This document shows positions 9,701 through 30,700 of a stretch of DNA of 64,000 nt, piece by piece. The DNA is taken from the NCBI RefSeq assembly GCF_006345805.1, contig NC_043011.1, positions 55,254,464-55,318,463 on the forward strand. Direction: 5' to 3'. The first letter of the stretch is position 1. Every line of letters starts with the position of its first letter. The notes under the pieces are model-generated. The model made no database searches, was not told the origin of the DNA, and was given only the letters and a program-made list of their open reading frames with translations. The position numbers and the translations under genes are program-made. The stretch comes from Octopus sinensis. Taxonomy: Eukaryota.

Positions 9701-12700
9701 CTTAAAGTAAGTCATTATTAATTTGCAAGTGAAAGTTTTAATCAAATTTAGACTAAACATTTAAGCTAAAATATTTAGATGTTTGTGCACAAAGAAACCA
9801 TTTTTTTTTCAATTTATTCGAGATCTGCTAAGTTGCCACTGATGTGAACTACATAATGCCACAACTATACAAGTTAGTTGTTAATAAAGGTTAGTGAGTG
9901 ACAGTAAGAAAGGGGGGGTGTTTTTCCAATGCAAGGAAAGTGCTGTCATTTACTCACCTCAGCATCAAGCTGATTGGTCCCATTCTCCAGGCTTGAAGGA
10001 GAGATGGGAGTTGGGGACCATACCTTCTTCACATGGATTCTCTATAAGCACAGGAGACAGCAATGCAAGATAGAGGTTAGCAAAGTTGCGGGTGTGTGGC
10101 AGAAAAAAAATGGGAGGCTGAGCAGTGCAGTGATTCATGTTGATAGAAATTAATGCACAAGAAATAGAGTGAACATAGAATTAAGGAGAATATAAAATAT
10201 GGTAATATTATGAAAGAGGTGCAAAGCTGTTGTGCAGGTAAATGATTAAGTTGCAAAAGAAAAGAGTTTCAAATATATTTTGAATTTCTATAGAATATTA
10301 TTCCATTTATGCAGCTAGGTTGATCTGGAAGCTAAACAAAACAGAACAGACTTGAAATAATGTTTGGATTCCTAGTTAACGAATATAATGAACAATATTT
10401 AAAATAATTAACAACTTGAGTTTTGTTTCACATAACAGCAAAAAATGCCAAATTGATAATGTAGAGAATAGGTCACATTTAAAAATTAAAAAATCCTTTT
10501 CTACAACAATATTTTCTAATTCTCAAAAGCAAGCAACATTAAAGTAATTAAGAAAAATCTTTGTTAACACACTTTGCCTATTTTTATTGTAAATATTTGT
10601 AAATTTCATTAAATTAAATCTGCCAACAATATTTAAACATCTCCTTCACTCAATAAACACGGGATTATTTTGTGAATAGCTTTCCCACGAGAACATCCAG
10701 TTTAGATGAGAAAAGAACTCAAGGACTTAAAGAAGAAAAGGTTTACAAAGAATTCAAAAAGAATTCAGTTGAGAAATGGAGTTCATAGATTTGTGAAGAG
10801 AGGTGATAATAATGGCAAACAGAGAATTTATACAAAATGGTTCCCAAAACAATATCCTAGAGGAGGAGGCAAGAAGAGATGAAAATAAGATGCAAGTTAA
10901 ATAAAGGGGTCCAGTAATCCAAACAAAAATCAGCCCAAATAATGAGGGCCTTGAATGAGATTTCTGCAACAAAGTGCTGTCACAATGTTAAGGTTTGTGT
11001 GACTCAACAATCCAGAAGGCCAACAAAGCACAAAATCTTGATAGGGATTCCTATTTCAAAGGATAAGCGCCAAGCTAATACAGACCACTCTTCAGGTTTG
11101 CATAGGGCCAATATCTCTACCTAGTGAAAAAAAAGCTACAGAAGCCCATGACAGTACAAAAACAACAAGACCTGGGAAAGGAAGACCTTCATACACATCA
11201 GGCCTTGATCAGGAAAACCTAAAAGGAACCTGCAGTGGGATAATGAGGCAGGGTTGAAAAAGCAGGATTCCAATTGGAGAACAGCAGAAGAGAGAGCCCA
11301 GAGTTAAGAAGAGAAGGGGGGAAATTCATTATGGCCTAAGTTCTACCTGGAGAGAAAAACTTGAGTAAGATGAAATGACACTTCACCAAAAAGTTGAGAT
11401 TGGTAGAAGAAATACTTGAGAGTGAGGTTATAAAGAAGAAAGAGAAGAATGAAAATACAGGAGGAAGAAATGAGAAGACTTTTGATAGAGAAATACTGAA
11501 CTATTATTTCTTAAGTATTAATTTTCTTAAATTCAGCAACGACTAAAGAAGAAGTAGAACAGTTTCAGATAAAAATCCTCACAGAAACGATGATGATGAT
11601 GATAATGATGACAAACGTTAAGAAATCAAGATACAATGTATGACAGACTCATCCAACCCATGCCAGCATAGAAAAAGGAAATTTGAAAATGTTCAACTAT
11701 TTATTAGTTTTAGACAAGTTTAAATAGGATGATTTTGAGGAAAATCTATAGATTTATATATTTTGTGAATGGAATTATTTTTACAGTTGAATGTAAATAA
11801 ATCGTCCTTATCAGTAAACCGTTTCTTAGTTTATTGCTTAAAAGATTCCTTTTCTTTAGTTTTCATCAAATAAATTGCAATCAAATGTGATAATACTTTC
11901 GATCAAGTATTCAGCTCTCTGCTACTTTAATCTCAGGTCACATTCTTCGTGTGTGGATTGTAAATATGTTTAAGTTGAGATTTTGCAAAATAATTATAAA
12001 CATTTGTCACTGTTGAATTAGTTTTACAAGGTTTTTGTTTAAGTGAAAGACTAGAGTAGAAAAGGAGTGAAAAACCAGCATTTTTAGAGGACTTTTAAGT
12101 AAATTGCATGTTTATATTTATATTTATTTCTAGGGGATTATGGAATATAGAAACTTTAATTTTGGCTGAGTTTATTTACTTGGAAATATTAAGAATTATT
12201 TGACATTATTTGAAAAATCTAAATATGCCAAATTACCAGAGCAACAATTGGTTTGGTTTGGGATAAGTTGGGTGTGGTGTGGGGTTTAAGCACATGATTT
12301 AAATTTTGGTAAACATTGAAAATACAATAAATATTAGAAAAGAATAACCTAAAATATTCCTTCAAGAACCCATGGATCAATTTAAGTTGATGAATGTGTG
12401 TGTGTCCGTGAATGAAACACTCAACAGATTGCTGATGTTCAGCTCATAATAATTCATGGCAATTCTCAATGATTCTCACAGTAAAAAAAATAAATTTTAT
12501 AAAAAAATATTTCTAGACATTTATTTCACATATGTTGTTAATTAAATGAAATAGCTAAATGTTAGTTAAGATGTGAGGAGGCAGCAACAAGGTGGTGGTG
12601 GGGGGAGGGGACATGAAGCAGGTCGCTAAAGTGTCGAAGGTGAGGGATTTGCAGGAAAATTATTTCAAGGATGTTGCAACAATTATTTGGGGGAGAATTC

Positions 12701-27700: not shown

Positions 27701-30700
27701 TACACTCTCGGAGTGGTTGGCGTTAGGAAGGGCATCCAGCTGTAGAAACTCTGCCAGATCAAGATTGAAGCCTGGTGCAGCCATCTGGTTCGCCAGCCCT
27801 CAGTCAAAATCGTCCAACCCATGCTAGCATGGAAAGCAGACATTAAACGAACAGTAAGCATTGCTTCTGTAGATTAACTTCCAGATGGAGAAAGATTTTT
27901 ATCTTTTAACTTCTTAAAGTTTATTAACAAACACCCACAGCTTTGGATTAACTAAATCCAGAAGTATAATAGGAGAAATTTGCTGACTTCCATAATCCAA
28001 TCAATTCAGATTAGGTAATTAGTTTCTTTGAAGAAGTCTTGGAATCTTAAACCAATCAGTTTGTTGGCTGTTTACACCTGAGATCAGTGATTATTCCAAT
28101 TACATTTAGATTAGCATTCAATTAAAACAAGACAAATCGATTGCCTAAGAATAAATCCAGCCCAAGGAAAATGCCGATATGACTCCTGAAGACAATCAGA
28201 TGAAGTTAACAGCATCAATCTTTATTACTGAAGACAGCTGTCTTGAAACAAAGTCTCTACAACAGATCCATTCTTTCTCTATATTGTGTTTACCATTTTA
28301 TTTGTATTCAAAGGAAATCACTTGAAACTGAAATTCTGATGAGTTCTGCAAGTTGCCATTTTTATTAGACATTTTTGAAACTCATTTTGATTATGGTTTA
28401 TAGGAATTCAGTGGAAAAACTAAGGGAATCAAATTCCATTTTATGCTATTCTGGTTCATAGTTTTAATATTTTGAAATCCTACTGAAATCAGGTCAGGAT
28501 TTCATTTGTTGTAGATTGAGAGTAACAGGACAACATTTTGCAAATGGAGTCAGAGTGGTTTCTTTTTTAAATTTTAATTTAACTTTTAATAGTGACTAGC
28601 TTAAAAGTCGCACTCCATGCAGACTTTTAAAGCTAGCTCCAGCGGAGGGCTAATTGGGCCTCAGCCCAAAACCAACGAGACCTAATTAGCATGACTATAA
28701 TACATGTATAATGACTAAATGCCCCATTGGTGTTTGTTCAGAGATTAAGGACGGATGAGAATTAATTCTGTAATGGAATCGTTCTATTGTTCCTGTCCCA
28801 AGTTAATTCCAATTGTTTGCCAACTTGTCCCAAAGTTCTTATATTGACTTGAAATTAACGAACCAAATGTCATTTATCTCTCACTTGACCTCTAACATCA
28901 TCTGACAAACGCCAACCAAGATGGCGTGAATCAGCCAAGCTTTACCTGCTAGAAATAGCAACCCAAATGCTTTTAAATCAGATCCCCATGCTGGGTGTTC
29001 AAGAACCAAATGAAGGACAGATTTTCAATCCCAGGATCATCCTGATTCCAAAAAGGTATAATATGTCTATGCAGAGCACAGGTAGACCAAGATACAGATG
29101 TCTTGGACGAACAGACAGAATTTCGTGTTTATTATTATAGAAATATAATTTCTTTGTTTCGTATATTTTTTTGTTTTCACAAATATTTTCGAATATACAA
29201 AGAATATTTAAAACCAAGAGCTGAACACTAGAGATATTTCATGAAAGCAGATTGGATTTTAAAAGGAAATAAAACCTAACAAAAACAATTATTTTTTAAA
29301 TGTTCAAAAGGAATTCTATAAAACAGAAGGAAACAACCAAATAGATTTTGTTTCTGTAAAACGATGATACAAATATTAAATTATTGAGAAGAGAGAATGT
29401 TATTGGCGGTATTAAAGAGAATGTTATTAAAAGCAACAAACTATGATACAATGAGAATGGACTATTTACCTGTTTTTGAACAGCTTTGGCAGATGTAATT
29501 GGAGGGCAATTGGTCATTTGACCATCCTTAGGTGGGGAAAAAATAAATAAAATAAAATATACTAAATCCAGCTTAACAAATGATATTGAACACAGAAAAA
29601 AAAATATTTTAATGTGGATTTGATTTTCATGAATTCTAAGGAAATATTTACATATAACAACATTCAGATTGTTTTTAATCTTTAAACATTTAGTGTCAAA
29701 TTTCAATTTTTAGTCAACAGAATTCAAATACTGAGGTTTTATCACTTTAATACCTCTCTCTTTCTCAACAATAGTCATGATATTTCTTCCCTTGCAAATG
29801 AATCCAGTTTGTTTCCCAGCTCCTTAACCCTTTTGTTACCGTATTTATTTTGAGATGCTCTGTGTTTCTTTCAATTAATTCTAAATACAACAAAGAATTT
29901 AGTAAAATAACTTCATTATCATTAACCCTTTAGTGTTCACATTATTCTGCCAAAATTAATACTTCTTTATTCACATTGCTTTGAACTAATCACGCATTAT
30001 CTTGTAGCTTTGAGATTTTGATGAGGTAGCTGTTAATTTTTAAAACGACATTGTAGGGTTGGCGTGAGAGACCAGATCTGGCCAGTTTGAACATAAAACA
30101 GGCAGAATACATTTGGCCGGATATGGCCGGTTTAAATGCTAAAGGGTTAAGCTAGTGTTAGGAACATAAATTGTGACTAAGGTTTGGTGGAAGATTTTAA
30201 TTCAAAACTTATGAAAACAAAACATTTGTACTACAGAGCCAGAGCTGGTTTCAGCCGGGTTGGTTATGAAAGGGTTAAAAAGACATCAATGATATCTCAA
30301 AGATGTTATTCAAACACTGTTTATACATTCTTCAGTTTTTTTAATCTCTTTTATAGATTCTTTAACCGGAACCTTTGTTGTTTCAAATTCTTTCTACTTA
30401 CCTTTATTGAAACCAAAACAGACACCATTCATATCCATTGCAAACCTCTTTCAACATTCAACCAGGGACACACATAGTTGTGTAGTTAAGAGGTTTGCTT
30501 CACAACCAGGTGATTCTAGGTTCAATCCCACTACATAGCACCTCGGGCAGCAAAGGGTCATCTGCCATAGTCTCAGCCGACCAATGTTTTAGAAGTAAAA
30601 TTTGCCAGACCGACATCATGCAGAAGCTGGTCGTGTGTGAATGTGTGTGTGTGTGTGTGTGTGTGTGTTGGCAATGTGTAGTCAAACAAAAGGATACCTT

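Follow-up and report, generated by a model that had tools for sequence, protein, structure and literature searches.

The 64-kb window of Octopus sinensis DNA analyzed here (the whole stretch, whose positions are used throughout) carries a coronin gene on its minus strand, and this work deals with the linker of that gene, the interval 9958-29526 that lies between the exons that encode the conserved coronin domain and the exon of a putative coiled coil. Exons were located by tblastn with a vertebrate coronin sequence as probe, which served solely for this purpose; the splice sites were set by eye and the exon coordinates were then obtained by script. The resulting map has, on the minus strand, nine coding exons of the coronin domain, spread over 44919-32869, and at 6762-6613 the exon of the putative coiled coil. 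The coding features that flank the linker are the following.

53210-53275, minus strand: alternative first coding exon (MEGPAPASPSKRMKSTGWGLVT) that supplies the N-terminus of isoform X1, with donor ACG/gttaga
44919-44725, 38865-38749, 37965-37819, 37669-37505, 36930-36811, 36294-36190, 35675-35579 and 35451-35339, minus strand: coding exons 1-8, coronin domain
32982-32869, minus strand: exon 9, the last of the conserved coronin domain (SDQFQDD...ILVSLQ), exit phase 0
6613-6762, minus strand: last coding exon, putative coiled coil and stop codon, outside the linker interval, conserved in Argonauta and across lophotrochozoans

The 710-amino acid (aa) product assembled from the window is an exact match to O. 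sinensis coronin-2B isoform X1 (XP_036365658.1), which is composed of the first exon at 53275-53210, the core, exons 10a and 10b, exon 11 with its start at 23858, exon 12, and the penultimate and last exons. In this product Pfam recognizes DUF1899 (PF08953; E 2e-32, residues 26-90), WD40 repeats and PF16300 (WD40_4, residues 365-407). The coronin core has 391 aa and bears the coronin signature, and over residues 22-418 there is an end-to-end alignment with the domains of coronin-6, 1C, 1B and 1A in PDB (E 1e-135 to 1e-141). On direct inspection, the last exon accommodates four heptads with I/M/I/I at positions a and L/K/L/I at positions d, and this putative coiled-coil segment is kept in all the lophotrochozoan coronins seen. 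Judged from these sequence features the octopus gene is a short coronin, that is, a propeller followed by a unique region and a putative coiled coil. Exon 9 is 83% identical over 125 nucleotides (nt) to its Argonauta counterpart, with an identity of 0.98 in O. bimaculoides. For the other annotated N-termini (MSPTEQKADG and MGSASVE) no coding sequence was found within the 64-kb window, and therefore the gene start lies outside the window end; the O. sinensis gene model spans approximately 127 kb. The DNA of the window is AT-rich and is 94-99% identical to the O. vulgaris assembly.

The exons of the linker itself are given here with their entry and exit phases.

29470-29526, minus strand: exon 10a, 57 nt, phase 0/0, optional, in front of 10b
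25376-25566, minus strand: exon 10b, 191 nt, phase 0/2, ends in EFVTLS, present in every isoform examined
23678-23858, minus strand: exon 11 as annotated, 181 nt, phase 2/0 (SDPANN...SSSPVD), always follows 10b
20232-20462, minus strand: exon 12, 231 nt, phase 0/0 (NSLPFDQ...SDER), optional, seen only in Octopus species
15288-15308, minus strand: microexon 15308, 21 nt, KLITKTK in phase 0, optional cassette with strong splice sites
13571-13596, minus strand: 26-nt exon 13596, LRDLPSH and a TGA stop in phase 0, used after exon 11 or after KLITKTK
12711-12731, minus strand: microexon 12731, 21 nt, phase 0/0, KQSNGQK, optional cassette
9958-10041, minus strand: penultimate exon, 84 nt, phase 0/0, optional cassette

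The use of these exons was followed in 26 cephalopod proteins, 18 of them from Octopus, that were parsed into linker modules. The main protein cluster has 41 members, including O. sinensis X1-X17 and O. bimaculoides X2-X18; 15 of the 41 were among the matches listed and one more was recovered by exact look-up. A search with the 696-aa product named Route A in the original prediction, in which 10b is joined to exons 11 and 12, matched the coronin-2B models of O. sinensis, O. vulgaris and Argonauta hians, as well as seven full-length open reading frames (ORFs) from assembled runs of more distant cephalopods, with 71-77% identity.

From these data we consider it very likely that the linker is formed by a constant pair, exons 10b and 11, by five independent phase-0 cassettes and by one truncating 26-nt exon, and that its diversity comes from ordinary cassette splicing. 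In all 26 parsed proteins exon 10b is followed directly by an exon 11 that starts with SDPANN or the orthologous SDP..., and 10b and 11 are the sole phase-linked pair. Exon 10b is conserved in Argonauta and in other lophotrochozoan coronins; exon 11 shows an identity of 0.967 with O. bimaculoides, where its acceptor (ttttccag/TGATCC) is kept. The five optional in-frame cassettes measure 57, 231, 21, 21 and 84 nt, every one of them in phase 0/0 and with a length that is a multiple of three, so that each can be included or skipped independently with the frame intact, which accounts for the many combinations found: the 18 Octopus proteins show 15 distinct linker configurations, and after exon 11 each of exon 12, KLITKTK, KQSNGQK and the penultimate exon is present or absent among the parsed proteins. 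The original prediction had described the linker as a modular isoform generator in which the choice of the first exon restricts, through its exit phase, the legal downstream exons. The combinatorial part of that idea is borne out by the configurations just mentioned; the phase gating is not supported, given that all the optional cassettes are 0/0 and that the 10b and 11 pair does not vary among the 26 proteins.

Exon 10a had been proposed as an alternative to 10b, and it is instead an optional cassette placed in front of it. The two exons are found together in X1, X5, P0127, P0132 and other isoforms and differ in length (57 vs 191 nt) and in end phase (0 vs 2), and a mutually exclusive arrangement was for these reasons rejected. 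The sequence of 10a is 100% identical in O. bimaculoides, with intron flanks at 0.96-0.97 vs a background of 0.90, and is 86% identical to Argonauta over 120 nt; the exon is included in transcript contigs from two sequencing runs (L005 and L006). The penultimate exon, in turn, is skipped in O. vulgaris X15, in O. sinensis X12, X14 and X15, and in P0130, and the match with Argonauta extends over 150 nt that include the intron flanks (90.7%). Conserved intron flanks are a hallmark of regulated exons, and the raised conservation of the flanks at 10a and at the penultimate exon suggests that their splicing is regulated. Two O. bimaculoides models have a frameshifted C-terminus: X18 by means of an alternative acceptor that lies just upstream of the penultimate exon (10098-10045 in the window) and from which the frame runs to a stop, and X14 by means of an extra small exon, SLLNLRNN (window ~11525-11545, near 11542), whose counterpart in the window runs into a stop.

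The two 21-nt exons are microexons, in the sense that they are not longer than 27 nt, have a length that is a multiple of three and are alternatively included. KQSNGQK (12731) is used in O. sinensis X10, X12 and X14 and in O. bimaculoides X14. Its Argonauta version is KQSTDQK (protein P0132), and the DNA match there is 88% over 42 nt, with a score of 59 vs 19±2 for shuffled sequences; in a transcript contig of a more distant cephalopod (L002) a 21-nt element encoding RKCNSHQ occupies the KQSNGQK position and replaces the penultimate exon. KLITKTK (15308) is used in O. sinensis X9, X12 and X16 and in O. bimaculoides X16 and X18. A single substitution separates the two species at this exon, and it is synonymous in phase 0; comparison at the DNA level did not find the exon in the Argonauta locus. 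With regard to an SRRM4-type factor, inspection shows a TGC approximately 18 nt upstream of 12731 and none within 20 nt of 15308, an observation that does not decide the matter.

Exon 12 is used in O. sinensis X1 and X5 and in O. bimaculoides X2 and X4. Between these species its identity is 0.92, with a length difference of 3 nt, and that of its flanks 0.89-0.90. In the Argonauta locus the DNA score for exon 12 was marginal (33 vs a shuffle maximum of 30) and tblastn gave nothing colinear, so the exon was treated as absent; it is also absent from the parsed transcript contigs of more distant cephalopods. The intron between exon 12 and microexon 15308 contains a minisatellite (~17070-17620, minus strand) that is open in all three frames. 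No isoform examined combines exon 12 with either of the 21-nt microexons, and the X1 backbone carrying one or both microexons was not found in a collection of 15 billion proteins. This lack of co-occurrence could indicate coordinated regulation, or merely the limits of the gene models.

The sixth variable element is the 26-nt exon 13596. Its length is not a multiple of three and, in phase 0, it reads CTA AGG GAT CTC CCC AGC CAT TGA, that is, a truncating exon with an in-frame stop. Three models end in LRDLPSH: O. sinensis X16 and X17, and O. vulgaris X2. In O. bimaculoides 25 of the 26 nt and both splice sites are kept, the donor (AAA/gttaag) being weak, and in the Argonauta locus the exon was not found by DNA comparison. 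Given the position of the TGA, the product that includes this exon has no coiled coil.

Much of the original prediction was correct as a reading of the sequence. The exit phase 0 of exon 9 and the entry phase 0 of the penultimate exon are confirmed, the phases and lengths of the nine modules that it listed between them agree with the sequence, and translation reproduces both Route A (696 aa) and the peptide given for Route B (568 aa), in which 10b is followed by the modules 15791, 15308, 13596 and 12731. Six of the nine modules (10a, 10b, 12, 15308, 13596 and 12731) are annotated exons. The remaining three, exon 11 in the long form (23939-23678, 262 nt, 2/0) and the modules 15791 and 13739, comprise the following segments, which are used by no protein.

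23859-23939, minus strand: upstream extension of exon 11, 81 nt, missing from all proteins
15751-15791, minus strand: module 15791, 41 nt, 2/1, most likely plain intron
13597-13739, minus strand: upstream part of module 13739 (13739-13571, 169 nt, 2/0), open in the window

The proteins start exon 11 at SDPANN, which places its acceptor at 23858 and not at 23939, 81 nt upstream; the extension was discarded as an exon given its absence from proteins and a frame-breaking 17-nt deletion in O. bimaculoides. Module 15791 has a purine-rich acceptor that scores -4.2, compared with -3.4 to +12.4 for the real acceptors, in a leave-one-out evaluation with a matrix built from the gene's own splice sites. 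Its identity with O. bimaculoides (0.878, with three non-synonymous and two synonymous changes) equals that of its flanks (0.88). Module 13739 has suffered indels of +1 and -2 in O. bimaculoides, by which the frame is lost. Neither of these two modules is in any protein or is conserved in the Argonauta locus. On the minus strand, the interval from exon 9 to the penultimate exon has 1,079 AG and 1,245 GT dinucleotides, which form 17,170 AG...GT pairs spaced 15-300 nt, and 6,004 of these are open in at least one frame. With so many open modules several frame-closing routes are expected by chance, and closure of the frame is not evidence for any of them. The likely reading is that 15791, 13739 and the long form of exon 11 are pieces of intron that by chance stay open between an AG and a GT.

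The phase-gated system itself holds that a choice between 10a and 10b is followed by asymmetric modules (15791, 2/1; 13596, 1/0 as read there; 13739, 2/0) which limit the exons that can legally be spliced downstream. In its favor, the arithmetic of Route B closes on an open 568-aa frame, three of the four small modules of that route are genuine exons, and the stretch corresponding to 15791 in O. bimaculoides retains the AG, the GT and an open frame. Route B, however, needs 15791, whose acceptor is poor and which evolves like its flanks, and it reads 15308 and 13596 in phases that differ from the phase 0 in which these exons are really used, where they give KLITKTK instead of EINNKNQ, and LRDLPSH followed by the stop. 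Phase gating requires at least two alternative asymmetric exons in different routes; the 26-nt exon is seen in a single frame, the terminating one, and in O. bimaculoides indels disrupt 13739. The routes that join 10b to 13739, or that use 10a directly, are unsupported; 10b was always followed by exon 11 in the parsed proteins. Route A as written, Route B and the direct 10a route, each with two N-termini, were not in the 15-billion-protein collection, and a chimeric query made of the peptides of 15791, of 15308 and 13596 in phase 1, and of 13739 retrieved no octopus protein and no fragment with route-specific peptides, a weak negative given that the collection seems to hold few short octopus fragments. 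Together with the abundance of open modules by chance, these results make the phase-gated system highly improbable.

A different objection is that splicing noise or modeling artifacts account for most of the annotated diversity, with one or two functional isoforms (for instance, 10a-10b-11-penultimate-last), and with exon 12, 15308 and 13596 being recently exonized intron of no consequence. These three exons have no Argonauta counterpart and are absent from the parsed contigs of more distant cephalopods, the identity of exon 12 with O. bimaculoides is just 0.92 beside flanks at 0.89-0.90, several models have frameshifted tails (O. bimaculoides X14 and X18), and the Octopus isoforms seen are computed gene models. 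We nevertheless regard this explanation as rather improbable, because alternative use of 10a, 12731 and the penultimate exon recurs in independent lineages and is also seen in assembled transcripts, the intron flanks at 10a and at the penultimate exon are conserved, and the models of O. sinensis and O. bimaculoides, made independently, both include exon 12 and KLITKTK with an intact frame. Some of the same facts also weigh against our own reading of a constant pair, independent cassettes and a truncating exon. The Octopus isoforms come from RefSeq and other computed gene models, in which combinations of distant exons may in part be inferred; the unlisted members of the 41-member cluster could include an isoform that lacks 10b and 11 or one that uses 15791; rare tissue-specific junctions are argued against only weakly by not appearing in protein databases; and exon 12, 15308 and 13596, whose functional importance is uncertain, are conserved little above intron between the two Octopus lineages.

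The evolutionary comparison separates the linker exons by depth of conservation. Colinear conservation with the Argonauta hians locus (L001) is confined to exon 9, 10a, 10b, the 3' part of exon 11, 12731, and the penultimate and last exons, and the remaining matches are interspersed repeats; a colinear match at 7233-7160 was considered as a hidden exon and rejected, being AT-rich, low-complexity intron with stops in all frames. In the O. bimaculoides locus (L003) the real exons are 0.92-1.00 identical vs 0.90 for aligned intron. Conservation of the modules in other cephalopods therefore holds for 10a, 10b, exon 11, 12731 and the penultimate exon, and fails for 15791 and 13739, which are conserved no more than intron. 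So far as these sequences reveal, exon 12, 15308 and 13596 are Octopus-only. In more distant cephalopods, transcript contigs with uninterrupted ORFs vary in 10a, in a KQSNGQK-type microexon and in the penultimate exon.

Outside the cephalopods, coronins of bivalves, gastropods, a chiton and a brachiopod have 10a-like and 10b-like segments in tandem (P0135, P0139, P0150, P0156 and P0164), the Lingula pair being DGHVSNNPVITTAKAVQKK and DGNISHTPVITTYKATKGQ. Two KKVWSP-type motifs are also present in other molluscs and in Lingula, in the regions of exon 11 and of the penultimate exon, and together with the tandem segments they indicate that the modular linker is old. Exon 10a (29470-29526) and the first 19 codons of 10b (25510-25566) share 8 of 19 residues in octopus and 10 of 19 in Lingula, and 10a looks like an old tandem duplicate of the start of 10b. 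In the window a KKVWSP.SPS-like motif is found twice, in exon 11 (23678-23858) and in the penultimate exon (9958-10041), and skipping of the latter takes away one copy; the paired motif could represent a conserved element of the short linear or phosphorylation type. A broader proposal is that the linker is an ancient lophotrochozoan modular region derived from two duplicated units ('DG..P.ITT.KAV', the type of 10a and 10b, and 'KKVWSP.SPS', the type of exon 11 and the penultimate exon), to which Octopus would have added KLITKTK, exon 12 and the 26-nt exon as a regulated switch to a coronin lacking the coiled coil. We put this forward tentatively, as a possibility that is somewhat doubtful. If it were true, the locus would offer a compact case from nature of how microexons arise and of how splicing can switch the oligomeric state of a cytoskeletal protein.

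The introns contain other elements that are not part of the coronin product. An interspersed repeat of about 150 nt occurs in both orientations (~24276-24426, 27707-27848, 33264-33565, 43125-43436, 44335-44655, 59856-60095 and 62058-62495) and has many copies in the Argonauta locus as well; the translations of the copies share a peptide, and the repeat is probably a SINE-like (short interspersed nuclear element) sequence. Three ORFs in the upstream introns (45834-46874, 59031-59258 and 40836-41228, plus strand) give the impression of mobile-element remnants: two look like the C-terminal portion of a reverse transcriptase from a retrotransposon, and one like the N-terminus of a transposase; Pfam gave no significant match for the putative transposon ORFs in the introns.

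Alternative exons in animals include microexon programs, in which frame-preserving exons of up to 27 nt are spliced into disordered or surface regions, often in neural tissue. The octopus linker resembles these programs in having two 21-nt, phase 0/0, lysine-rich exons within a disordered region, one of them (12731) conserved from Octopus to Argonauta. Splice variation in coronins has precedents. In Caenorhabditis elegans the coronin CeCoro1 is alternatively spliced in the low-complexity region before the coiled coil (PMC3203266), and, like the octopus gene, it is a short coronin with pre-coiled-coil variation (PMC3203266). The nematode variants are few and some are regarded as doubtful, whereas at least five cassettes, 21-nt microexons among them, vary independently in octopus; between the two phyla the unique regions cannot be aligned. 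In vertebrates, coronin-1D has mutually exclusive duplicated exons 5a and 5b, and human coronin-1C has N-terminal variants (PMC3203266). A duplicated exon in a coronin gene is shared with octopus, where 10a resembles the start of 10b; in contrast to 5a and 5b, 10a and 10b belong to the linker and not to the propeller, have unequal lengths and end phases, and are co-included. The literature searched on coronin splicing in octopus or other cephalopods, and on coronin together with microexons, contained nothing relevant.

The closest known system is the set of public coronin-2B models themselves (O. sinensis X1-X17, O. bimaculoides X2-X18, O. vulgaris and Argonauta hians), which represent the same gene with the same exons: they hold 10a, exon 12, KLITKTK, LRDLPSH with its stop, KQSNGQK and the penultimate exon, and they include neither Route A, nor Route B, nor the direct 10a route, nor the junction of 10b with 13739. 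The exons and isoforms are thus already in public gene models (RefSeq), nothing in the sequence is new, and the impact on the annotation is small. The locus is of use as a calibration case, in which reading splice consensus by eye found three genuine exons of 21-26 nt in 23 kb of intron, and frame closure then built the wrong route from them.

The coronin propeller binds F-actin and the coiled coil oligomerizes (PMC3203266). Inclusion of the cassettes would alter, both in length and in charge, the disordered tether that joins the actin-binding propeller to the oligomerizing coiled coil, and would supply the tether with lysine-rich patches and with the second KKVWSP-type motif. Inclusion of the 26-nt exon would end the protein short of the coiled coil, or possibly lead to a degraded transcript. 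As seen at this locus, the unique region of coronin in cephalopods is diversified by independent phase-0 cassettes, including a variant without the oligomerizing coiled coil, and the locus is relevant for work on actin regulation or on microexons in cephalopod tissues.

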